A stretch of 63,871 nucleotides of DNA, the filler included, from Octopus bimaculoides (lineage: Eukaryota): NCBI RefSeq assembly GCF_001194135.2. It is 6 parts of 6 records of this genome, joined end to end, with 100 filler letters (N's around TTAATTAATTAA, not from the genome) between each part and the next. Parts side by side here need not be neighbours in the genome. Positions count along the whole stretch, not along the records: positions 1 to 15,666 come from NC_068988.1; 5 more parts are not named here. One strand, written 5' to 3'. Both the position numbers and the translations under genes were made by a program. Position 1 is the stretch's first letter; every line of letters begins with the position of its first letter. The notes beneath the pieces were generated by a model that had not been told where the DNA came from, ran no database searches, and saw only the letters and a list, made by a program, of their open reading frames with translations. Below, piece by piece: positions 1-15,879 of the stretch.

Positions 1-29
1 TATATATATATGTATATATATCTGTATAT

Positions 30-278
30 ATATATAATTGTTAAAGAAGACAACAAATGTTAAGGCAAGACAAAACATCTCAAGTCATATACGTGATTAT
101 TATTCAAAAATTCAGTCTTGCAGCTGTTTTAGGATTTCCCAGAGGACGAGATATTCCGTCATCGGAGCTATCCCAGAAACAACTACAAGTCTTTGAAATT
201 TTCCTATAATAATAATGCATATAACTTGAGATATTTGTGTTGCCTTAACGTCTGTTGTTGTCTTTAACAATTATATAT
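30..278. repeat. Foldback (palindromic) element with ~100-bp arms, embedded in (TA)n
   Basis: Left arm aattgttaaagaagacaacaaatgttaaggcaagacaaaacatctcaagt is the imperfect reverse complement of acttgagatatttgtgttgccttaacgtctgttgttgtctttaacaatt; pairing continues inward to about 130/177. Confidence 0.8.
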
Positions 279-404
279 CTGCTATATCGGAAGTCTACAA
301 AGGCTCCATAGCTTCTGTCTCAGCTATATCCTTGAAGCCCTGGTAATCCGTTACATAACTTATTCAGCGTACCTAGTCGTTTAGATCACCTGTGAATTCA
401 TGTT

Positions 405-437
<33 letters not shown>

Positions 438-1229
438 NNNNNNNNNNATATATATATATATATATATATATATACATTCAAACACACATATACATATTTA
501 AGTGTAAGTATAAAGATGTTATTTTTTATTTCTATAAATGTATGTATATAGGCAACTCATGCACGCACTCACACATATCTAAGTATACATTGGTATACAT
601 AATTTGAAGTATAATCTAAATTCTACTGCAATAAGATGTAGATAACCATAGCATCTACAAAAAATCTTGCGTCCCGATCTGAAATAAAGAAAAAGTCATT
701 ACAAATCAAGTGAAATAAAGAGCATGGTCAAATATAAAACTGACATTGCCATTTAGATGAAAAATACATACAGATTACCGAAAATGAATATTTGAAGTGT
801 AAAATTATATAAGAATCAAAACAGACGTAATGAAACATTTTTAATATGCAAATGTAATTAATCGAACGTGTCTGATTATCAGGAAATATAGCCTTAGATT
901 TATTAGTTTCGCCTTCGATATCTTTCAACCAACAAGCAAAATTTACCTCATTGCATATTGGGGGACTGATTTCGAAGGTGATTTCACAATTATAATACAT
1001 TTTAAAGGAAAATCATTAACAATGATTAATATGAAATCCAGAATTTGTCACTCTGTAATATTTAAGTTTTATGTTAAACGACTTCAGTTCGGATTAGAAT
1101 TTCTATCGAATTTTGCTATGCAGTTCAGATCTGATCTCCGTGGATCTTAAAACGTATTTTGAGACCTCCATTAGACTTGTAGCACTTACGGCATACATAG
1201 TACTAAAAGGTGTGCACAGACACATAGGC

Positions 1230-1650
1230 CGGATAGTTAGTGAAGGTTCGTTTTTCATGGGTCCGCAAAGGAGATTTGTGCCCAGCAAAAGAAAGGTATG
1301 GTCTGTCATCAACTGTGCGCACAAAATCTTCCATTGTGATTCACCTTCTCGATGGTAACTTTCTTCTTTAAATGTGTCTTCAGTCTTGCATGCATTATCC
1401 CGGCTTCTTCAAGCGCTTTCACTCCACTCCACATTTCTGTTAGCCATCCGGCTCAATCCGAAGCAAGCGTTTCTGTATCTTCTGGATCCATTCCAAGTGA
1501 CTTCATGGTAGTCCTTATGCGGACCTTAAATATCTTTTTAGGTTTACACCGAAAGCGTTTCCCCTCTGCAAGGTTGTCATAAAACAGTTGTTTGGATGTA
1601 ACTTTCATCTGCCATTCGAACAATATGGCCGGACTCTCTCACTTGGTTTT
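1230..1650 (-). mobile_element. RTE-clade LINE, degenerate 3' coding fragment
   Basis: Frameshifted minus-strand translation SGHIVRMADE..KQLFYDNLAEGKRFRCKPKKIFKVRIRTTMKSLGMDPEDTETLASD matches the RTE C-terminal pattern (GHVVRM, KQLFY.EL..GKR). Confidence 0.7.
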
Positions 1651-1659
1651 TCAGAATCA

Positions 1660-3390
1660 TTGCTTTAATTGAAGTGATGCCTGTAGTTGCAGGGACATCT
1701 GTTTTTGGAGTAAAAGAACTCCATTTAATGTTTAAAATGGGATGAAGTTATTTTGGTGGAATTATTCTAACAATTTGAAATGAACACTCTGCCTCTTTCT
1801 GTGGCTTAAGGGCTCTAACTAGGATGCTCTTAATATTGGGTGCACAGCTAAGCGAAACTCTAACATTGTGCCTGTTGAAAATGGTCTCATATCTATGGGG
1901 TTAGTAAAATGATTATCTACTAATTTAAAGAATATTCTGCCCACGTGTTTTTGTGTTAAGAATGAAGGGTAGGGTAAACCAAATGGTATTTCTGCTACGC
2001 TTCCTTTTGCTGCTGTTGGGTTCCGGCATGTAGGAGATGTGGTCTCTAAATCCGCTGGTAGCATTGTCTCGTTATATTACGGGGCAGCTGCGTCGAAAAT
2101 CTCTTGGTTGGAAGAAATGTTCGTGGTCCTCTTACTAACACATTTTACCAGGTTTTTGGATACGATGGGTGGGTGGCAGAAGGCTGTGATGATGTACTTT
2201 AGCTTCTCGTTTGGTTTGCAGCAGGGCCTGTATTTACTGGAGCCCAAGTCGAGCGAAACGTCTAAGAAGTCCGCAGTTGTGAGGTTGGTCTTTATAGTGA
2301 TTTTCAAACCCGTGGAGGTAAGCGTGCTGCTTAGATCTTTCCTAAGATTTGTCTAGTGTATGTCCGTTTGTACCCATAGCGATGGCCAGGGCATCATCTC
2401 TGTAGAGGCCAAAGAGGACAGAGGGGAACTTTTTCCTAAGGGTATCGAGGATATACAACCTGATGAGGTCGCTTACGTTAATACTGTCGAAGGCTTCCAT
2501 CAAGACGTCAAAGGAGGCTGTAGTGTCAGATTGCTTGACACATGCCAAACCTTTGTTGAACAGCATTGTCTTTATGACATGCATAATGACTTATATGTTT
2601 CAGTGGCTAAGGTCAGTGAAGCCCCTAGCGAAGGAAAGCGCCTTGGACAGTAATCTTTTTGACACAGACGAGGAAAAGTTGACTTGCTCTGCCTCTTCCC
2701 TTGTTGATGTTAAACCATACGGTGTCTTTATTGGTTCTGAGCCACAGGGAAAGGCTGCTGGCCATTATTATGTCGTTATTGATATCTCTCAATATGTGCT
2801 TGTTCGACACCGATCTCGGAGTTGGCCGGATTGATCAGGTGACATTTAGGGTTTGAGGCAAAGTTCAGTTCACGATCTTTAATGGCTTGGATCTCTTCCC
2901 TATACGCTATCTCTAGTTCGTTAGTTATTATTTTTTTTGGGCTTCACTGTTGATGTCGTTATATGTGTATGGGAAAGCGCACCTGTAATTTTGTGGGATA
3001 TTATTTTCTATTAGTCTATGGTAATCAAGTGCGCCTATTCAATATGTTTTTAGTCTTATGAGAGAAGACTGGGGACCTATCTAAGTTTTTTAACAATCCT
3101 AATGTCCACCCGGAGATTGTATTGGAAGGAGAAAGAGGTCTTACAGAATTTCAGCTTGAGAATGATGCCAAGTAGGTCTGCTTTGAAAGGTTCGTGGTCC
3201 TTGATTTTGGGTGGGTGTTTCCTAGATCTGATTCCATGTTTACTGTACTCTAGGGATGGTACGATCAGGTGGTGGTCGAATGCTTTCCACTCCACACACC
3301 TAATCATGTCCATTATCTTTTCCAGCAGCATGAACGGGGTGGGTATATTCTTAGTGGAGCAGCCGAGGTCAAACCGTTCCATATTTTAGT
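1660..3390 (-). mobile_element. Penelope-like retroelement, degenerate reverse transcriptase region
   Basis: Minus-strand pieces in the expected order: FDLGCSTKNIPTP, DTVWFNINK, GLYRDDALA (RT catalytic), DFLDVSLDL, HPPIVSKNL, HVGRIFFKLVDNHF. Multiple stops and frameshifts. Confidence 0.85.
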
Positions 3391-3621
3391 GGAGTAGACG
3401 AGATTAAATCGTTACATATGTATGCGAGATTCGTGGTTTCTTCGGCTACTCCATTAAAAATGAGGACATCATAGAAAAGTCATGTAGAGTCAGAAAGATT
3501 AGCCGTCCTGCAGATATGAATAATCAGCAAGAAAGTGAATATCTCTACGGAAGCAGCAGCTCCTCTACTTTCATTATCAAAATCAAACTTATATCAATAA
3601 TGATTGGCGCTTATTGTTCTT

Positions 3622-3644
3622 TTAGTAAATGTCGGGGCAGCAAT
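3622..3644 (-). CDS. PAN-domain secreted protein, exon 5 (terminal, (D)CCPDIY*)
   Basis: Acceptor tttctctttttcctag; phase 1 matches exon 4; 73-nt intron; total CDS 705 nt = 235 codons. Confidence 0.5.
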
Positions 3645-3717
3645 CTAGGAAAAAGAGAAAAATAAACACTGACAAACATTAATTTTAGATTACACGAAAA
3701 CGAAATTTAATACTTAC

Positions 3718-3824
3718 CCTTGATGTTCTCTCTGTAAAAAATGCGATAATTGTTATTGTCTTCCCCCTTCTTTGCTCTCATTGCAGAATGATAATTATAT
3801 GGTCGGATGGTGATAGACTCGTCA
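3718..3824 (-). CDS. PAN-domain secreted protein, exon 4
   Basis: Acceptor tttgcag, donor G|GTAAGTA. The only open frame is phase 2, which is what exon 3 requires: DESITIRPYNYHSAMRAKKGEDNNNYRIFYRENIK. Confidence 0.7.
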
Positions 3825-4382
3825 CTGCAAATAATATATTACAACTAATGGATTCAATAACGTTCATCATAATGTAATACTTTACGACTGTATTTACAAC
3901 AATCAGTTCTGTTTAATGAGTTTATATTTCATCTTTGAAATTATTGAGTGTGTTTTCTTAGTTTGTTATTTATAACATAAAAAGTAAACATGAACTGTAA
4001 TTTGGATAAATCAGATTTAAAAAGGAGTGTCAGATGAGATTGAAACGAAAGTTTTAGGAAATGTAACTGATACGGATGAAAATAAAAATGGCTGCCAGAA
4101 GCAGTTTTGAATATGTGCATTGGCTGTAGATAAGAGCTTGCTTTTTACCAGTTTGAAGAACCGTAAATTCACTATCGTAACGGAAGAAGAGATAGACAGA
4201 GTAGAGACTGTGAGGTTATTGGTCATTAGTTGTACTAATGTGCACGTGTTTGTAGTATTTGAATGGACAAGACTGGCTATCATTCACCTTTCAGTTGTAA
4301 ATCCAACGGTATATTTCCCACTTAAAGCTACGGTTTCCTACTTCTTTCTGTAAACTGAAAAAAAATATTTATATACACATAA

Positions 4383-4810
4383 TCATGATGGAAGAGTACT
4401 CCAACTGGCACGGGAGCAGAATTGCATTTTAGACGCATGGCAGAAATATGTAGGGTTAGCGCATTGGAGGAGAGTGCCAGGCGCCTCGAAAACCTGTTCT
4501 GAGAGTGCCAAACGCCTCGAAAACCTGTTTTGACAGGTAACGACTAAGTTTTCTCGATGCACCTGCGTTGACGAGAAGCAAGCATTGCGGTTCATCCAAA
4601 TCGTACCTAGATGAATATTTGTTGGAGCAGCAGATAACGATAATATAGGATAATACAGTTCTATACTTAAGAGATGGGGAATTATGTTCATTATTTACAT
4701 TGTTTACGTTTGACGGATATTTGTCCTCATCTTGCTTGTTGTTAATACAACATTTCATCCTTCATCAGGTGTCTTGGGGGAAATTTCGAACCTGGATTCT
4801 CATTCCTAAG
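4383..4810 (-). mobile_element. Interspersed repeat with a Penelope pseudo-LTR-like end and an internal 31-bp tandem duplication
   Basis: gagagtgcc..cgcctcgaaaacctgtt occurs twice (4471-4532); eroded CTGATGAAGG..GAAATGTT on the minus strand at 4748-4768. Confidence 0.4.
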
Positions 4811-4824
4811 GTGTTTTTTATTGT

Positions 4825-4870
4825 TATGTTGTTATTATTATTATTATTATTATTGTTGTTGTTGTTGTTG

Positions 4871-4916
<46 letters not shown>

Positions 4917-4990
4917 GATTGTTATTATTATTATTATTATTATTGTTCAGTAGTTTTATTTTTATAACGTGCTTTCACTTCACTACCGAG

Positions 4991-5072
<82 letters not shown>
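4825..5072. repeat. (ATT/GTT)n microsatellites
   Basis: Directly visible trinucleotide runs. Confidence 0.95.
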
Positions 5073-5076
<4 letters not shown>

Positions 5077-5149
5077 TCCCTGACTGGAATCGAACTCGGA
5101 ATCTTGGGGTTAGTTGCCCGCGCTCTTAACCACTACGCCATATGCCCGT
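5073..5149 (-). mobile_element. tRNA-derived SINE head with (AAT)n tail
   Basis: A box TGGCGTAGTGG and B box GAGTTCGATTCC on the minus strand, no acceptor stem, followed by (AAT)n. Confidence 0.75.
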
Positions 5150-5688
5150 AGGATGTTCACATTTCAAAATGGCTGGTCACACAGATCATAAATTTGATGT
5201 CCGTTTGATCGACCTAGTGAATACTCGATTGCTGGCGAGCGAATGTCGTTTCTGGTGAACAAAACTAGAAGGACCCTATCAGTAAATATGCTAAGGAACA
5301 ACTGATGGGAAAAATTACCACTCATGTTCTTTAGTGAGCCCTTATGACTAATAATGAAAAAAATTATTATTAGAATTCTTATAATCATCATTGTCATTAT
5401 CATCGTCAATTAAAATGACTAAAGGCAGAATCGACAAGGTTGCAAATAATACGCCATTCTGGAGTTATTTTTGTTCATTAATATTTTGAGTGTGAATCTC
5501 ACCACAATCTATTCTGATATTTATTTTGCGGCTCGATAAATTAATACTCGTTAATTATTGAGATGGATGTATCATAGTTAACTGTGATGTATTTTCGAAA
5601 TATTTAAGTTTTTGCTCATATGAGAAATCGTAATTATTAGCATTGAGAAACCATAAATGTGAATAAAAAACAAGTGGTTAATATATAC

Positions 5689-5843
5689 TTATAATTAAAC
5701 TCGTAGTTTCCTCGGTAATTTCCGAACCACGGCGGCGATGAAATGAGTTTACTCTCCTGGAACCACGATATGTAATTTGTTCCTCTTCCATCGAAAATTA
5801 ATGAGTGAATGTCAGCATTATGTTTTCTCAACACAAGTTTCAC
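5689..5843 (-). CDS. PAN-domain secreted protein, exon 3
   Basis: Acceptor ttttgttttttgcag, donor AA|GTATAT; VKLVLRKHNADIHSLIFDGRGTNYISWFQESKLISSPPWFGNYRGNYEFNY; phase 0 to 2. Confidence 0.85.
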
Positions 5844-6289
5844 CTGCAAAAAACAAAATTAAATAAATTGAAGTAGAAACCTGAGAGAGAGAAAGAGTGA
5901 GAGAGAGAATATGTGTGTGTATGTGTGTGTGTGAGAGAGAGAGAGATAGAGAAGACGAGAATGTGAGAGAATGAGAAAGCAGGAGGTCGAGAGGGAGACA
6001 GAGAGGAAAGGGTATGCGGACAGAGAAAATGAGGAATGGGGAGCGAGAGATGATGATTGGGAGAAAGGAAATGAGGAAAAACAGTTGAGAGAAAGAAATG
6101 ATGAGGGTGAAATGGTGAGAGAAAAGTGTAGGGTGAGCTTAAAAAAAGATAGGATTCTGATGAAAGATGTACGTGGAACATTTTGTACGTTACAGGATAT
6201 AGAACAGGACGGTGAAGTAATATCAACTAAACATTAACTGTGTAAATTTCGTTGCATATGTAGGAGAGATACTTTATCTTAGTTCTTTA

Positions 6290-6780
6290 CTCTTTTACTC
6301 TATTACATGTTTCAGTCATTTGACTGTGGCCATGCTGGAGCACCGCCTTTAGTCGAGCAAATCGACCCCAGGACTTATTCTTTGTAAGCCTAGTACTTAT
6401 TCTATCGGTCTCTTTTGCCGAACCGCTACGTTACGAGGACATAAACACACCAGTATCGGTTGTCAAGCGATGTTGGGGGGGGGGGGNNNNNNNNNNTGCC
6501 GAACCGCTACGTTACGAGGACATAAACACACCAGTATCGGTTGTCAAGCGATGTTGGGGGGGGGGGACAAACATGGACACACAAACATGCACATACACAC
6601 ACATTCATATATATACATATATACGACGGCCTTCTTTCAGTTTCCGTCTACCAAATCCACTCATAAGGCTTTGATCGGCCCGAGGCTATAGTAGAAGACA
6701 CTTGCCCAAGGTGCCACATAGTGGAACTGAACCCGGAACCATGTGGTTCGTAAGCAAGCTACTTACCACATAGCCACAAC
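6290..6780 (-). mobile_element. tRNA-derived SINE of the most abundant family in this window
   Basis: Head ggctatgtggtaagtagcttgcttacgaaccacatggttccgggttcag and core gggcaagtgtcttctactatagcctcgggccga; homologous to the copies near 18.4, 21.7 and 37.2 kb. Confidence 0.85.
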
Positions 6781-6909
6781 CTTTAACAGATTAATGACAG
6801 ACGGGTATGAAAATAAAATATTGGGTAATTTTACTTGCAATGTCATTGCTTTCTACCTAGCAGAAGATTTAACTCTTCACTTATCTGATAACTTCAAAGC
6901 GGAGAACCG

Positions 6910-7890
6910 AGCAGATGGCATGGTTTCTACAGCTGGTTGTCCTAATGCCCTTCCTAACGCTAATCACTTTACAAAGTGTACAGGGTCCTGTTACGCAGTA
7001 TCGGTACGGTACGGGTGCTTTTTACGTTGCACCAGCACTTACGAGCCAGAAAGATTACAGATGCTCAGCTGGAGAAGGTTGCAATGAACGGGCATGCACA
7101 CAAGAACAACAACGTTTTTACTTACCTTGAAGTATCTTTTCAAGTATAGCAAACCATCAGGAGTCTCGGTCCCCCTGCTATCCCCTCTGTGACTCCCAAC
7201 GTTTGTAGATCCTTTCCCACCATTTCGTCCCACATCTTGGATCTAGCCCTCTAGAATTTGAGATCGGCATCTCTTGATGCAACACTCCTCATTCATACGC
7301 ATTACATTGCTATAGCGATACAGTCTTCTCTCTTGCGCACTACATTTGTTGTTATCTATATCTAGTTCCTCTCTCAAAACACTCACAATCTGTCGTATAT
7401 GCATACTAACATTATCCATCCTGCGAAGCATACTGGCTTCATTTCTTTCAAGCCTTCGCAGTAGTGATAGCCCATGATTTACTGCTATATAACATAGCTG
7501 TCCGTACATAGGCATCGTACAATCTGCCTCAATCTCTGAGGGAGAGCCTCAGAGGTGGTAGTTCTCTGAACTTCGCTCAGCCTATTCGTATTCTAGCAGT
7601 CATGCTTTCGGAACAAGCACACCTACTATTAATTTGGTCACTTAAGTAACAGAAACTGCCTACTCCTTCTACGGAACACTTTTGACATACGAGGGATTCT
7701 ATTTTTTGTACATTCCTGGTATTTAATATACTTGTACATCAGTCACATGTAAAGACTACTTTCTCCGCTTGTCGTCCAATGTTACAGCTGTACCTCTTAT
7801 GCTTCCATAGCTTGCACTGGGTACGCCTGATGGAGTTTCTCCGATACCTTTTCTACATATCAGACAGGGCTACCTCCATGAAGGTACCTG
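6910..7890 (-). mobile_element. RTE-clade LINE 3' fragment including 3' UTR
   Basis: Minus-strand C-x2-C zinc-finger-like stretch, then SMTARIRIG.AKFREL, LRRLERNEASMLRRMDNV and QERRL; the tail is shared with the copy at 46680-47600. Confidence 0.8.
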
Positions 7891-8109
7891 CGTTTTGTCT
7901 TTTATCCTACTTATCAATACGATAATAATGATGATGAGGATGATGTTAATAACAACAACAACAACAACANNNNNNNNNNNNNNNNNNNNNNNNNNNNNNN
8001 NNNNNNNNNNNNNNNNNNNNNNNNNNNNNNNNNNNNNNNNNNNNNNNNNNNNNNNNNNNNNNNNNNNNNACGTTATAAAAATAAAACTACTGAACAATAA
8101 TAATAATAA

Positions 8110-8672
8110 AATGCCCTGAAGCAGTCCCAGACAGTTGCTCTCATGGCTTCTGCTCTTAACTGACTGGAAGTGTTATCATCTACATTGTTTTGTCTTGGTA
8201 TAATAGATGGGCTACAGCAAATATTCTGCTTAATACCACAGATTTGCTTGGCAGTTGTTTGACCTTAACCAGTTGAGCATGTCCCTTGGTGGCTGACGAT
8301 ATGTGCATCTCTAATCACAAGCAGAAGTAGTGAGGGAGCATCATCGTCATGTGTTGAAAGGAATTCTTTGTGGTTTGGATAATTCACCTTTGGAAACATG
8401 GGTGTTTCGTTCAATATGCTTAAAACAAACCTTATTCAGGGACATTTTGAGCGGGATGGGCTACACGACGTGAAGAAAATTTTAACTGGGCTCCACCTGC
8501 AAGGGCATGTGCTGTTAATCGTTGTATGTGTTCATCATGTTCCACACGTTTATGGCTGTCAAGCATGTGTCTGGTGTATCCTTATCAGACGGGTAGTCAT
8601 GATGGGTATACTGGGCTTCGTATATTTTACCCCAGCATCACTTTGATGGCATGCACTACTCTCTCACTCGAT
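8110..8672 (-). repeat. Interspersed repeat of ~560 bp (family A, copy 1)
   Basis: Collinear homology with 59185-59583 (ctctcatggctt, aataccacagatt, gtgttgaaaggaattctttg, ctctctcactc). Confidence 0.8.
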
Positions 8673-8697
8673 AATGATGATGATGATGATGATGATG

Positions 8698-8767
<70 letters not shown>

Positions 8768-9520
8768 GGGGACGTTTAACAGAGAGCACCGAGGACGTTT
8801 AACAGAAAACACCGGGGACGTTTAACAAGTGAAAGCGATAAAACACTGCTCCGAAATTTATCCAAAAACATCGGAACTAAAAACAGCACATGCAGACAGA
8901 AATTTAGCTGACAATGGGTTGGACTATATCCGATTAAGATAAATAAAAATAGAACAATTAAAAGGAAAAATACATCAGTAAAATCTAGATAGTAGCCACA
9001 CAACAATGCCAAATAATATAAACACTGAGATAGTAAAACACGAAGACAAACGTACCATTTCCAACAAAAACGAAGTAAACAAAAAGCAACAATCCCAGAC
9101 CGGAGGGATGTATAATAATGTACAAAAAGCACCAATCCAGAACACCACAGACAAACATGAATGAAAAGGAAGGCGAAACAAATCTAAAATCTGGAAACAG
9201 TGTAGGGGAACCTAATGATTATGATACTATAAAAATGAGAATAATCAAAGAACTGAAAACCACAGATCTTAGAATGGATCACAGATTATACCTCCCAAAA
9301 ATCAAAATAGACAACATCAATAAGGAATAGCATAAACCTGGCTGTCATGGAACTAACAGCCACAGAAACAACTGGTAATATCACTGAGCTAAATAACATA
9401 ATATATGCAGCAGCCACTGCAGCCACAAAAGAAGCAAGATACTCCCTCAAACCCATCCAAACAGGAGTACCACCACCCAAACAAACCTTGTGGATAAATA
9501 ATATCCAAAACAAAATTGCA
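8768..9520 (+). mobile_element. R4/Dong-clade non-LTR retrotransposon, degenerate 5' part
   Basis: KMRIIKELKTT, HRLYLPKIKID, ITELNNIIYAAATAAT and LWINNIQNKI resemble R4-clade N-termini; starts immediately after (AAT)n. Confidence 0.6.
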
Positions 9521-10021
9521 AACTTGCCAATTCACTACCCTTCATCAGTACCTGATTGGTACTTTATTACATTGACTCTCGGAGGAAGAATTATAAAGTT
9601 GGATGACACGGGCGGTATTTGAACCCTGAACATAAAATTTCGGTTGAAATACTGGATGACAATTGTCTCATGGTCTAACGATTTTAAATCACATACATTG
9701 TTGTTTTCCTTTAACCCTAACTATCCATCGTGGGAGGTGACATAAGATGGAAAATGTTCCAGCCTGTAGTTTCTCAAGATATTGTTTCTCAGAAAACAAT
9801 AACCAGTAGTTAGGTAATTTCTAATTTGTAGTAGATTTGGCTGTTATTTCCTGCAAATCAAACGATTACAAAGAGGTTCTCTCGTTAGTTGAACTTTTTA
9901 GTTTGTAGGCACTAACGAGTAGCTAACTTTAAGTTTTCTCGCTAAAAGAAATAGCCAAACATAAATATTTATGCGTGTGTGTGTGTGTGTGTATGTATAT
10001 ATGTGTTTGGTTTAGCATGTA

Positions 10022-10066
<45 letters not shown>

Positions 10067-10068
10067 TT

Positions 10069-10115
<47 letters not shown>

Positions 10116-10418
10116 TTGTGTGTGTGTTCGTGTGTGTGTTTGTGTGTGTGTGCTTTTGTATCATTGTATCAGGGCTGAAACACCTGATATAGAGTGGCAT
10201 ATATGAAAATAAGACAGGAACGAAAGTGGCACATATTTGACAACATAGTTTAAACAGCAATGGCAGCACCAACAATACCAAGAAAATAAATTACCATTGC
10301 ATTAATGAAAAAAAAAATAAAAGCAAGAAATAACGTCGTCCACGACATAACAGACTGACAACTATGTAATACTGTTTATCAAATGACAATCGTTTTGAAA
10401 ATTGAAAATGTATTTTAC

Positions 10419-10510
10419 CTTTTCAATTGGCAAACTCTCCCAGTATTTATAAATAGGACTTCTTTTGAAAGACTTTTCGTTAATCTCAAATACTTTTTGC
10501 CAGCTTGTAC
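10419..10510 (-). CDS. PAN-domain secreted protein, exon 2
   Basis: Acceptor atgcag, donor AAG|GTAAAA; (G)TSWQKVFEINEKSFKRSPIYKYWESLPIEK; phase 1 to 0 links exons 1 and 3. Confidence 0.85.
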
Positions 10511-12281
10511 CTGCATAGATCATAAATAAGTTGAATAATTTAGCTGCAGTGGTATACATAATTCGCTATAGTTATTTAAGAGGGCTGGTGTCGTTTGGCC
10601 TGGAGGCGGAAATATCACATACATAAAATATACAGTTCACACAATCTTATTAGCAGAATTGGAGAGGTAACTTCGGAGATCACAGGCTGTCGTAGTCGGA
10701 AAGTGAGAGGGAGGGTCAGTTGATAAATTACAAGAAGACAAAGTGTATGGCGGCTCATCGTTAAACTACTTTGGGACTGTGATAACAGAAGATACAAGAT
10801 ATATGAATGAGATCGAAAGACGAACAGTGCTGGTAAAATTTGGAACTGTTTCAGAAAGCATAGAACATAATTGTGGCAGGACATGATCGTTTATGTTGTA
10901 CATTCGCCAGACACTTCCTTGAAGAAGAGGAATACACTTCTTTGAAGAAGAGGAATAAATTTCCTTGAAGAAGTGTATGAAATATTGTCATTGTTTAAAT
11001 TTTGTAAAAAATACATATATGTTTTAATTCTTACACTTTTGAAGATTTTATCCTTGTAGGAAGGGATTAATTCAATGTTACACTTCTGTATTCGTGATCT
11101 AATGAAAAATATGTGATAAGATTCATCGACTACCAAACTAATTTTGCTCTAACAAGGGCAGGTAGTTCCTCCTGCCTTACGGTGGATGCATTGGCTATTT
11201 TTGCATTTTAAAAAAAATGTATTAGCCATGGCTTTACTGTTCATATGATCAGATTCTCTTCTTACTGTATAGCTGTAATATTCTCATAACTCTTCTTGTC
11301 AGCTCTTCTTATATTATATAGCTCATTTATTTCTTGATTCTATAATAAAATTAGTATTGCATTAATATTCACTATCATATAGGAAATGATTTTTCATAAT
11401 CAATTTTCGCACTTTCTTTTTTTTGGTGCGTTCGTATTATGCACTTTGTTTCAATATGAAAATTTTATATACATTAAAGATGTAGGTTCTTATATTTTTT
11501 ACAATTATAAATACATTTCTCATTATCCTAAAAACTTATTAATTTTAAAGTAAATAGACATACAGGTAGGTTTCATTTAATTGACACAAAAGAAGCAGTC
11601 ATTTATTTCTACTAAATATCGCTTGCATGTTTTATCTTTCAATGGGCAGACCAGGAAGTTCCTAGCAATGCTGTTCAGAAAAAGCAAAAGGGCAGATACC
11701 TCCCCGTGCCTTACGATGGATGCATTCACTATTTTCACATTTTTCAAATCATTTTTATATTAGCCGATGCAACGAAACCCTGTCCAGATAACTTTTTCTT
11801 ATTATTATGAATTAAGACAAAAATGTGAAAATTAAAATAAAACACAATAAAATATTCTTATTTTAATTCAATCATCAACAATGAAATATAATTCAAATAT
11901 TTTTTTAACAAAAGAATATTTATTAGTTTTATTGCATTGCCTGGAAAAAAGTTTATTACAATGAAAAATGCGGATGTATGCATGTCAGTATTCTTAAGTA
12001 TTTACTCTTGGAAACGTACAGACCAGTAGTATTTGCCTAATTCGTCAACTCTGAAGGAAACTAAAATGTACTTAAAATTAATATTCTACTGTACTTAAAA
12101 TATTGCAACCGAAAATAACATTTATAAAGTTAAAATACATTATATTAGGTAAATTTGAGATACTTTATTTTATTTATTATGAGAATCTAAAAAAAAAACA
12201 CATCTTTTAAAACATTGTAAAAAAAATCCAAAATAAATTCAAACAGAAAAGTTTTTTAAAATCATATATTTTCAAATCATT

Positions 12282-12900
12282 TTATTTCGTTGTATCAAAT
12301 ACAAACAATAAAATATGAAGTTGTAAATAATATTGCACAACATTATTTTTCACTTGAATTGAGATCCAATTACAAAAAAATATAAAAAGATTAATCGCAG
12401 TATAATGGTCATCAAATGGTTTGAAATCAACTGTATGCTCAGTCAATTCTTCTGCATTAAAAAATCTGACAAACAAATATTAAGTAAAATTTATTAGCAT
12501 TGTTGTAATCTGTTCTACGTTTTCTATTTGGTTGTCTTCAGCTTATTCTGTAGTTGCTAATGTATTCACCCAGAAATATTTTCAAATTGAAACAATGTGT
12601 TCAGAGTGACATGAATGCGCCTTCCCTTAAAAACAAAATTCTTTCTTACTTGCTGTTGATAAAATGATTAGCGTCATCAAAATACATTTGTGGAGAAATT
12701 TTAAAACATCAATTCCAAAACATTTCTGTTAGATTATCGTTTATTTTACTGGACTCGCTTACGATTACAAATAAACAACTGAGAGTAATCTCTCTTCGAC
12801 AATAAAAATAAGCGTAGGAAACATGAGCATAGTCGGAAAAAAATCCAATTCTTTTTTATCTAAAAATTTTTATGTCATATATAGGGATGACAAGAATTGA
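12282..12900 (-). pseudogene. Possible decayed hAT-like transposase fragment
   Basis: Stop-riddled frame with NVEQITTML..LFVRFFNAEELTEHTVDFKP, weakly resembling the hAT EQ.S..VRFV...EHFLGF motif. Confidence 0.3.
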
Positions 12901-14110
12901 ATCTCTTATCTATTTCTTTTTAACTAATCTAAAAACAATCAGATATATAACTTAAGGTCATAGTGGAGGAAAGCAAACGTCTTGTATCAACATAGCAAGA
13001 ACGTTTGAATAAAATAAAATGTATGTGAGAGTGAGTGACATAGCTTCCAGAAGACAAGCTATCCACTAGATAAAATCTGGAAAAAATCCAGGCTTTTATA
13101 GATTCCAATGGAAGTTTCTAGAAGCGTTCCGAAATACATTTTAGAACAATTCTGGCTAAAATCTAGAATCATTTCGGCTGAAATCTGTTCAACCAATAAG
13201 AGGACTTGTTTTAAATTGGCTTAAAACAAAGCTGCCAAAACAAAAGCACTCAATACAGCATTAATACAGTAGAATTAGCCTAATTCGTCTTTGGCTAATT
13301 CGTTCCTTCACCTAATTCCTCACTTTCAATTTTTTCCTAGGGTGGACTAATTAGTAGAATTTTACTGCAGTTTTTTAAGATTAATTTTATTTTATTTCAT
13401 TTTTAAAATACTGCTTTTTTCAAAAATAAGCCCATGGGCTTAACTACAGGCTTTAATAATTTTGCAAAAATAATTTTTTTCTGAAAATTATAAAAATATT
13501 ACTGGGGCTACTCATAAAATGACAATCGGAATATAAACACATAAGCTTAAAATCGGATGAGATTATTTTTGAAAAAACCCAGTAATATGTTTATAATTTT
13601 TGTTTTAATAAAATGTAGTAAATTTTTAAAATGTTATTCTCAGCTGCAATATTTTAAGTATAGTAGAATTTTAATTTTATGTACTTTTTAGTTTCCTTTA
13701 GAGGTAATAAAATAGGGAAATTGTACTGTATAAATCTTGTTCTGTACTTTTCCAGATGTAATAACTTAAGAATATTAACATACATGCACCCGCAGTTTTC
13801 ATTGTAATATATATTAGACATATTTGCACGATTATACTTACACTTGCAAACATACCTATGTAAGTATATATATGTANNNNNNNNNNNNNNNNNNNNNNNN
13901 NNNNNNNNNNNNNNNNNNNNNNNNNNNNNNNNNNNNNNNNNNNNNNNNNNNNNNNNNNNNNNNNNNNNNNNNNNNNNNNNNNNNNNNNNNNNNNNNNNNN
14001 NNNNNNNNNNNNNNNNNNNNNNNNNNNNNNNNNNNNNNNNNNNNNNNNNNNNNNNNNNNNNNNNNNNNNNNNNNNNNNNNNNNNNNNNNNNNNNNNNNNN
14101 NNNNNNNNNN

Positions 14111-14151
<41 letters not shown>

Positions 14152-14213
14152 CAACACAGCACATTATGCTAATGAAATTACAAACGAATGAAAGAAAAAT
14201 GTGATTTACATAC

Positions 14214-14541
14214 CGCCTCCGTTGAGCAAAATATACGATGAACAGTCGCAGTTATTACCACTAAGATCTCTCAGGTAAAACGATCGATGCATGCGACATG
14301 TGCCATTGCAATAGCTAAAATATCCACAACCATCGGATGATGTACACAGAGACGCACATTGGACACGAGATGACGTCTCCTCAATTGGTTTAAATGGGTT
14401 AGATAAGCATTGTGATTTAGGAAGTCTTTTGAAATTATTTTCTTTATACTCAGTATTCCCATTAATCGGAGACAAGAAAAGTACGAGTATCAAAGGTGAA
14501 CAGAATTTCAGAATGAAATGATTTTCAACAGACGTTGCCAT
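14214..14541 (-). CDS. PAN-domain secreted protein, exon 1 (signal peptide plus PAN/apple module)
   Basis: Hydrophobic leader FCSPLILVLFLSPING, then SRVQCASLCTSSDGCGYFSYCNGTCRMH (PAN C-x3-C-x5-C pattern); acceptor tttccag 2 nt before the ATG; donor G|GTATGT. Confidence 0.9.
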
Positions 14542-15879
14542 TCCTGGAAATATTATATAAATATATCGTTAGATTTATAAATAGATACATGCGCATACAG
14601 ACACCCCTGTATATATATGGAGAATAATAAAAAACGTTAAAAAAACAGTTTGAGTATTAAAATGCATATATACATTCGTTGATGATAAAATATATTTAAA
14701 GTATAAAGCTTTGTATGAACTTTGTAGTGTTACATACTGATTATCACACATTCTCTGATAATAAGATGAAAATGTTAAAAACAGTGTATGAAAATACACA
14801 TATGGAAAAATACTTATACATATTTTTGATAATCGAATAAAGTTGAGGAGGAACTGACCTGGCTTTTTTCTCTTGTGTATATTGAGGGAATGTTTTGCTG
14901 TCTTAAGAGACAGTATGACTAGCTAGCTGGGGTGGGAGGAANNNNNNNNNNNNNNNNNNNNNNNNNNNNNNNNNNNNNNNNNNNNNNNNNNNNNNNNNNN
15001 NNNNNNNNNNNNNNNNNNNNNNNNNNNNNNNNNNNNNNNNNNNNNNNNNNNNNNNNNNNNNNNNNNNNNNNNNNNNNNNNNNNNNNNNNNNNNNNNNNNN
15101 NNNNNNNNNNNNNNNNNNNNNNNNNNNNNNNNNNNNNNNNNNNNNNNNNNNNNNNNNNNNNNNNNNNNNNNNNNNNNNNNNNNNNNNGTTTGTGTGTTTT
15201 TTGTGTCGGTGGGGATGTTAGGTGTGTGTACGTGAGAGTGTGCGTATATCTCTTTGTCTGAGTATGTATGTGTTGTTTTGATCGTCCTTGTGGTGTGTGT
15301 GTGTGAGAGCAACCGTATGTATGTGTGAGGGTGTGTACGTATGTGTGTGTATGTATGTGTGCATCTGTGTGTATGCGTCGGAGTGAGTGTGGGAGTGTGT
15401 GTGTCTCTCTGTCTGAGTGGGTGTGTTGTTTTAAATATCCTTGTGGTGTATGTGTGTGTGTGTAAGCAACCGTATGTGTGTGTGATGGTTCATATGTATG
15501 TGTATGTCTGCATGTGTGTGTGTGTGGTATGTGTATATGAGTATGTGTGTGTTTTATCTATGGTAGGATGGTGTGTGTATGTGTGTACACGTTTGTGTGA
15601 GTGTGTATGTGTGTGATTAATATTTGTTAGGGTGTTGTGTGTGCGCATGTGTGTGTATGTGTATATNNNNNNNNNNNNNNNNNNNNNNNNNNNNNNNNNN
15701 NNNNNNNNNNTTAATTAATTAANNNNNNNNNNNNNNNNNNNNNNNNNNNNNNNNNNNNNNNNNNNNAAATGAAAAGAGAATGAAAACACATGTGCATCAT
15801 AAACAGGAGTGAACATGACACTTTAGTGTAAGTATCTAAACTGATTTATCAATTTCTTTAATTTTGTTCTTTTAATCTT

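Follow-up and report, generated by a model that had tools for sequence, protein, structure and literature searches.

PAN/apple modules serve in the extracellular binding of proteins or carbohydrates, and a lectin function is common among fibrinogen-related domains. Here we describe LOC106876620, a gene of Octopus bimaculoides whose product carries a module of the first kind and, in its C-terminal half, an unnamed domain that had been compared with the second. Most of the gene lies on the minus strand of the stretch analyzed here (the window: 63,871 nucleotides (nt), filler included, joined from six parts of the RefSeq assembly GCF_001194135.2), within the first part, positions 1 to 15,666, taken from NC_068988.1. 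An earlier note on positions 3622-14541, made from the sequence alone, had described a complete five-exon gene for a secreted PAN-module protein.

LOC106876620 is a real, previously annotated, uncharacterized gene, ordinary in itself, and the interest lies in the unnamed domain family more than in this locus. The combined evidence makes it probable that the product is a secreted protein, a PAN module joined to a truncated domain, from a diversifying family in Octopus that serves extracellular binding or recognition.

Identity of the gene and its product

The minus-strand gene in the stretch represents coding exons 2-6 of LOC106876620, which has six coding exons in all. These exons (13+330+92+155+107+56 = 753 nt, all GT-AG) span 22 kb on chromosome record CM046608.1, and their translation is exactly XP_052825843.1, a protein of 250 amino acids (aa) titled 'uncharacterized protein LOC106876620 [Octopus bimaculoides]' in RefSeq. 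The public locus (L002, CM046608.1:30720760-30762828, reversed) matches the window at 100% identity. The initial protein search returned Octopus proteins only: a 145-aa fragment, an older RefSeq model, and full-length paralogs of about 250 aa. We found no relevant literature on the gene, its relatives or the unnamed domain.

The product has three parts: (i) an N-terminal region with a likely signal peptide, (ii) a PAN/apple module with eight conserved cysteines, and (iii) a 135-aa all-beta C-terminal domain.

The signal-like segment and the PAN/apple module

Residues 14-28 (FILKFCSPLILVLFL), with a mean hydropathy of 2.45, form the sole strongly hydrophobic segment of the N-terminus and most likely act as a signal peptide; the equivalent segment is a low-confidence helix in the model of the paralog LOC106876622 (P0003). 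The cysteine core of the PAN module (C..C.....C.F.Y......C) is present as QCASLCTSSDGCGYFSYCNGTC, and cysteines 50, 67, 71, 77, 83, 87, 103 and 105 are all conserved across the paralogs. On the 250-aa protein PAN_1 (PF00024) scores 16.1 bits (E 0.01; Pfam cut-off 21.4), and it matches 16 of the 54 family members, with a best E-value of 6.8e-8.

The fold evidence comes from an AlphaFold model of P0003, which is 48% identical to the 250-aa protein; it was built from a 68-sequence alignment and has a predicted local distance difference test score (pLDDT) of 89.7 and a predicted template modeling score (pTM) of 0.82. The model matches the solved PAN/apple domains of plasminogen, TgMIC4 apple-5, HGF, Eimeria PAN and factor XI with probabilities up to 1.00. 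Its helix packed on a beta-sheet is the PAN fold: the match to 2ll3 has a target-normalized template modeling (TM) score of 0.73 and probability 1.00, and that to 4dur_B a root-mean-square deviation (rmsd) of 2.6 A over 77 columns, again with probability 1.00. The PAN/apple assignment of the N-terminal half is thus confirmed by the cysteine pattern, the family-level Pfam matches and the fold of the paralog model, and the earlier description of a signal peptide followed by a PAN/apple module stands, the first part as a hydrophobic signal-like segment.

The C-terminal domain and its invertebrate relatives

As the earlier note had claimed, the C-terminal half matches no named domain: Pfam gave no match on the C-terminal 135 aa, nor for this domain in any of the 54 family members, and profile searches against PDB sequences gave none either. 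A profile of the Octopus domain run against 1.84 billion cluster representatives collected 141 proteins, about 35 of them Octopus paralogs and more than 100 distant relatives. The latter match the core 'F.RSPI..W..LPI.KVK..L....IF.G.GTN..SWF...KLI..PW', with hmmsearch E-values from 1e-8 down to 1e-41 for non-Octopus proteins. The resemblance to uncharacterized mollusc proteins, which the earlier note had mentioned, is real and extends to starfish and amphioxus proteins.

The parent domain is about 190 aa long and occurs in bivalves, one gastropod, one starfish, amphioxus and Octopus, singly or in 2-4 repeats per protein. Its named carriers belong to Branchiostoma (several species), Acanthaster planci, Mizuhopecten, Dreissena, Saccostrea, Solemya, Sinanodonta, Nucella and Octopus sinensis, and all are labelled 'uncharacterized' or 'hypothetical'. 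It is combined with PAN, C-type lectin, SUEL lectin, F5/8-C, WSC, EGF, Sushi, TSP1, kringle, FN3, SRCR, D8C and ZP modules, all of which are extracellular.

Comparison of the Octopus type with the 190-aa type by hhalign gave 99.2% and an E-value of 7e-20. The joint alignment also pairs the two types at the first strand (W..VF) and at the last, which reads 'AD.maI.v' in the wider family and VDAMVIYILLQ in LOC106876620. The Octopus type (135 versus 190 aa) lacks about 45 aa after strand 1 as well as the cysteine-bearing 'GC..D.GW...C.WE' region. Since both the post-strand-1 loop and the cysteine-bearing region are deleted in all Octopus-type members, the comparison shows the C-terminal domain to be, at the level of sequence, a shortened, cysteine-free derivative of an unnamed extracellular domain of about 190 aa.

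Two other assignments were rejected. Pfam DUF7922 (PF25538) reached a summed 32-bit score on a four-repeat amphioxus protein only, with no single stretch passing; a single repeat alone gave no match at E up to 10, and the score is an artefact of summed weak scores. A reading of the hydrophobic C-terminus as a glycosylphosphatidylinositol signal was discarded because it covers only about 10 residues and corresponds to a last beta-strand that is conserved superfamily-wide and modeled with a pLDDT of about 97.

Relation to fibrinogen-related domains

The start of the C-terminal domain, GGG-x-W-x-x-VF, had been said to recall fibrinogen-related folds. In the P0003 model this domain is all-beta, with high confidence, and against PDB folds it found nothing convincing, the best non-PAN matches having probabilities of at most 0.13. 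A bivalve protein made up of the full domain alone (P0113, Solemya velum; modeled with pLDDT 92 and pTM 0.89), compared with the PDB by Foldseek, gave about 40 fibrinogen-related domains among its top 50 matches, including ANGPTL6, ANGPTL3, ficolins, fibrinogen beta and gamma, FGL1, tenascins and angiopoietin-2. These matches are weak (E at least 0.029, probability at most 0.63, TM 0.33-0.40, rmsd 7-9 A; none at E<1e-3).

For a profile comparison, 120 real fibrinogen-related proteins were collected, all of them database sequences, and 111 of their domains were aligned. Against these, hhalign gave 0.3% with the full domain and 0.2% with the Octopus type, and Pfam Fibrinogen_C (PF00147) matched 0 of the 54 family members. 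Given the weak fold matches and the negative profile comparison, the idea survives only as a weak resemblance at the level of the fold, and membership of the C-terminal domain among the fibrinogen-related domains is not supported. The 'GGG' itself is not conserved before the W in the paralogs.

The strongest alternative to the reading we favor is that the C-terminal family is a very divergent fibrinogen-related domain, and the protein a lectin of the ficolin or FREP kind, with PAN in place of the usual N-terminal region. It would account for the preponderance of such domains among the fold matches of P0113 (best ANGPTL6, with E 0.029 and probability 0.63, and ANGPTL3, with TM 0.40), for the weak fibrinogen-related matches of the P0003 model as well, and for a secondary-structure order that looks similar in the P0113 model; a PAN plus fibrinogen-related architecture is, moreover, known in a coral. 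However, no match reaches E<1e-3 or a TM of 0.5, the rmsd values and both profile results argue against it, and the Octopus form lacks what would correspond to the ligand-binding P subdomain, the site of the calcium site and acetyl-group binding pocket in fibrinogen-related domains. We regard this alternative as unlikely, while giving it more weight than any other.

The architecture just mentioned was seen in P0278 and P0280 (Oculina patagonica and a Logan contig), which carry PF00147 and PF00024 in one protein and parallel the combination of PAN with the unnamed domain.

Paralogs, family expansion and constraint

LOC106876620 lies directly downstream of its same-strand paralog LOC106876622, which has the same exon plan (13/330/92/152/110/56), and consecutively numbered paralogs (by LOC number) lie on the same chromosome record. 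In O. bimaculoides the short-type family has at least 13 loci, and in O. sinensis at least 15. Its named members all come from Octopus (O. bimaculoides, O. sinensis and O. vulgaris). The proposed lineage restriction therefore applies to the short Octopus subfamily but not to the parent domain, which is widespread in molluscs, starfish and amphioxus. One O. sinensis member (P0002, LOC118764386, 402 aa) carries one PAN followed by two tandem short C-terminal domains.

The ratio of nonsynonymous to synonymous substitution rates (dN/dS) was calculated by the Nei-Gojobori method for a single pair, LOC106876620 and its tandem neighbor LOC106876622. It is 0.07 in exon 3, where amino-acid identity is 90%, 0.43 in exon 4, 0.72 in exons 5-6 and 0.41 in the PAN module (dS 1.5), and 0.49 overall. 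These values indicate purifying selection, strongest on the conserved core.

The exon encoding the signal-like segment and PAN (14214-14543, compared with 14728-15057 of the neighboring locus L001) is only 53% identical at the nucleotide level (dS about 1.5), the 92-nt exon 88%, and the flanking introns 68-75%. This divergence of the PAN exon suggests either a mosaic history (through gene conversion or an exchanged 3' part) or that PAN evolves faster.

Proposed function and its alternatives

In the reading we favor, the protein would be secreted, its PAN module would bind a protein or carbohydrate partner, and the beta domain might provide a second binding surface or a surface for self-association. 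LOC106876620 would then belong to a diversifying family of Octopus proteins that act outside the cell in binding or recognition. This role is proposed because the protein has a PAN module, the parent domain is found with lectin and adhesion modules, and the family has expanded; the recognition or lectin-like role suggested earlier remains an inference. Several points weigh against it: (i) the PAN_1 score of the 250-aa protein itself (16.1 bits) is under the Pfam cut-off of 21.4, (ii) the structural evidence rests on a 48%-identical paralog and a bivalve relative, (iii) dN/dS gives no signal of positive selection in the single pair LOC106876620/LOC106876622, and (iv) the cysteine-containing part of the parent domain is lost in the Octopus type, so that any binding site located there is gone.

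A second alternative would give the protein a chiefly structural part in mucus, an egg coat or the extracellular matrix, instead of one in specific recognition. The parent domain is indeed repeated beside ZP, EGF, D8C and FN3 modules typical of matrix and coat proteins, but its other partners are lectin modules, and the LOC106876620 protein is small, with two modules and neither a polymerizing ZP nor a repeat region; we consider a structural role distinctly improbable, although none of the present observations distinguishes it from the favored reading. Still less credible, and very unlikely in our judgment, is that the locus is a tandem-array copy that is decaying or silent, annotated by homology and yielding no functional protein. 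Such a copy might be expected in a large and rapidly diverging family whose closest relative here is about 50% identical, with no close O. sinensis ortholog found in the protein search, with a dN/dS of 0.72 in exons 5-6, and with earlier annotations consisting of two faulty models that split the gene. Against this stand an ORF (open reading frame) intact over six exons, six canonical splice-site pairs, full retention of the conserved cysteines and core motifs, and the low dN/dS values of exon 3 and of the gene as a whole. A secreted binding or recognition protein remains the reading we prefer.

Exon structure and the earlier gene model

The coding exons are listed in Table 1 together with the assembly gaps.

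Table 1. Coding exons of LOC106876620 and assembly gaps in its introns (positions in the window)
Feature	Position	Strand	Description
Coding exon 1	8.1 kb upstream of PAN exon, outside window	minus	13 nt, ATGAATCTTAAAG, encodes MNLK + G; followed by donor GTAAGT
Coding exon 2	14543-14214	minus	330 nt, phase 1-1; acceptor TTTCCAG, then GA; donor GTATGT; G5-G114 + 1 nt
Gap, 234 N	13877-14110		intron between 330-nt and 92-nt exons
Coding exon 3	10510-10419	minus	92 nt, (G)TSWQKVFEINEKSFKRSPIYKYWESLPIEK; preceded by TGCAG, followed by GTAAAA
Gap, 100 N	7970-8069		intron between 92-nt and 155-nt exons
Gap, 10 N	6487-6496		intron between 92-nt and 155-nt exons
Coding exon 4	5843-5689	minus	155 nt, VKLVLRKHNADIHSLIFDGRGTNYISWFQESKLISSPPWFGNYRGNYEFNY; preceded by TTTTGCAG, followed by GTATAT
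Coding exon 5	3824-3718	minus	107 nt, NDESITIRPYNYHSAMRAKKGEDNNNYRIFYRENIK(D); preceded by TATTTGCAG, followed by GTAAGT
Coding exon 6 (terminal)	678-623	minus	56 nt including TAG stop at 625-623; (D)RDARFFVDAMVIYILLQ, then stop; acceptor TTATTTCAG

Only 1.1 kb of the sequence part lies upstream of the PAN exon, and a coding sequence for 'MNLK' was found nowhere in the window. Coding exon 2, whose product is identical in P0001 and XP_052825843.1, holds the signal-like hydrophobic segment and the PAN/apple module with its eight conserved cysteines. Coding exon 3 encodes the first strand of the C-terminal domain, a helix and the most conserved motif, and the hhalign match to the 190-aa domain has its core here. 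Coding exon 4, which is found in both XP_014783130.1 and XP_052825843.1, contributes the central beta-hairpin together with the WF motif. Coding exon 5 (its acceptor also given as TTATTTGCAG, its donor GTAAGT) is used by both RefSeq models and is collinear with exon 5 of P0003. Coding exon 6 supplies the last beta-strand of the C-terminal domain and fits the C-terminal motif of the wider family; the equivalent strand in the P0003 model has a pLDDT of about 97. The terminal peptide DRDARFFVDAMVIYILLQ, followed by the stop, maps to this exon, about 3 kb outside 3622-14541 and behind a good acceptor, and matches RefSeq exactly.

The five exons proposed earlier (328+92+155+107+23 nt), rebuilt on the minus strand from these lengths, do give a 705-nt open frame of 234 aa with AG/GT at every border, as had been claimed. 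Four of them, 14541-14214, 10510-10419, 5843-5689 and 3824-3718, are correct, except that the first begins at 14543, after the acceptor AG, so that the ATG at 14541 is the internal Met6; the fifth, 3644-3622, is wrong. The gene is not complete in five exons, as its first coding exon lies upstream, outside the window, and its true last exon is 678-623. The 234-aa product has no record in a collection of 15 billion proteins, whereas the 250-aa product is an exact RefSeq match; a 245-aa version beginning MATS is not on record in the protein collection either. The 145-aa Octopus fragment is 100% identical to the product of 14541-14214 and 10510-10419 but begins MNLKGMATS, and the older RefSeq model XP_014783130.1 places 3824-3718 directly after 5843-5689, followed by a terminal exon encoding DRDARFFVDAMVIYILLQ.

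The proposed 23-nt terminal exon (minus strand, 'DCCPDIY' and stop) is intron sequence: its acceptor AG is absent in the paralogous gene, and its use would delete the last beta-strand, which is conserved superfamily-wide. At the fourth position two 107-nt stretches keep the frame open, 5320-5214 and 3824-3718. The former (minus strand, NGNFSHQLF...) was rejected as a chance intronic ORF with AG/GT borders and weak sites; the homologous intron stretch of the paralog carries an in-frame stop and a 2-nt indel, and the likeness of 'NGNFSH' to the 'NENFSH' that starts the matching exon of other paralogs is at chance level (tblastn E 22). The paralog counterparts of 3644-3622 and 5320-5214 are intron aligning at about 70% identity, like much of the flanking intron. 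The five-exon model as a whole (ATG at 14541, end in the 23-nt exon 3644-3622, 234 aa) can hardly be right: its ORF is open, its borders are all AG/GT and the 23-nt exon has a good pyrimidine tract, but the product is unrecorded while the 250-aa product matches RefSeq exactly, the paralogs and P0001 begin MNLKGM... and so require an upstream coding exon, the paralog lacks the acceptor AG of the 23-nt exon, and the conserved terminal strand is encoded at 678-623.

Two features of other gene models were observed. XP_014783130.1 (P0008) opens with a 43-aa exon from the intronic ORF 7515-7387 (minus strand, MPMYGQLCY...MHIRQI) and omits the PAN and 92-nt exons; this ORF has no Pfam match and is unused in the current RefSeq model. 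The PAN exon is symmetric (330 nt, phase 1-1), and the O. sinensis models P0009 and P0013, in which MNLKG is followed directly by TSWQKVF..., read as if it had been skipped or were absent; products of this type would lack both the signal-like segment and PAN, and the two models may be genuine isoforms or genes, or else errors of annotation.

Intron content and assembly gaps

The three gaps are all intronic and are crossed by no reading frame, and the same N runs stand in the public chromosome assembly. The 250-aa product is collinear with the 250-aa paralog P0003 over its full length; thus, no coding exon is hidden in the gaps. An exact 70-bp direct duplicate (6416-6485 = 6497-6566), ending in poly-G, stands on either side of the 10-N gap; this looks like two overlapping contig ends left unmerged, so the true sequence is probably single copy and gapless.

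The same intron, which separates the 92-nt exon from the 155-nt exon, holds a segment a few hundred bp long (6286-6770) that recurs at 77-91% identity at several places around the neighboring gene (L001 573-1006, 10373-10573 and 25790-25875) and is probably an interspersed repeat. An intronic ORF at 2342-2584 (minus strand) holds 'GLYRDDALAI', reminiscent of the YxDD motif of reverse transcriptases, and has no Pfam match. Microsatellites and tandem repeats occupy 4832-5072, 8698-8767, 9975-10152 and 15519-15663 in the introns and the upstream region; the repeat types are (TTA)~79, (ATA)23, (GT)~90 and a 64-nt unit present 2.2 times. They account for several long low-complexity ORFs in the ORF list.

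Wider significance

The domain of about 190 aa is present in many marine invertebrates and has neither a Pfam entry nor a solved structure; defining and naming the family would better annotate thousands of 'uncharacterized' invertebrate proteins. It would also be of value to learn whether it is an offshoot of the fibrinogen-related fold, given the central place of that fold in invertebrate immunity. In the shortened Octopus array, the reduction of a domain and the expansion of a gene family are seen together in compact form. More broadly, and with somewhat less than even confidence, we propose that these proteins represent an undescribed, widespread extracellular family of marine invertebrates (molluscs, echinoderms and cephalochordates), perhaps sharing an ancient fold with fibrinogen-related domains, and that in Octopus the domain may have been reduced to a core of 135 aa without cysteines, joined to PAN and amplified, giving an array of secreted binding proteins confined to the genus.

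Comparison with known systems

Fibrinogen-related domains (ficolins, angiopoietins, tenascins and mollusc FREPs) give the 190-aa domain its best fold matches, weak as these are, and resemble it in size and in extracellular modular use. Unlike them, the unnamed domain lacks the hallmark motifs GGWTV, the DNDND calcium site and GGWW, its TM scores are below 0.5, and no sequence or profile similarity was found.

The PAN/apple proteins (PF00024) include the N-domains of plasminogen and HGF, the apple domains of factor XI and prekallikrein, and the apicomplexan MIC4 and SML-2 lectins. With these the Octopus protein shares the same disulfide-rich alpha/beta module and the core pattern C-x3-C-x5-C-x-F-x-Y-C-x3-C, and the P0003 model superposes on the solved PAN domains. 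In contrast to them, it has a single eight-cysteine PAN followed by an unrelated beta domain, stands in no protease, kringle or microneme context, and scores below the Pfam cut-off on its own.

The C-terminal half finds its counterpart in the 190-aa domain, exemplified by Solemya velum KAL5005486.1, Dreissena KAH3750350.1 (PAN plus the domain), Branchiostoma XP_078667427.1 (four repeats) and Acanthaster XP_022098360.1. The Octopus type has in common with it a homologous core (99.2%) and the first and last strands, and the architecture of PAN plus this domain is found also in bivalves, a gastropod and other Octopus genes.

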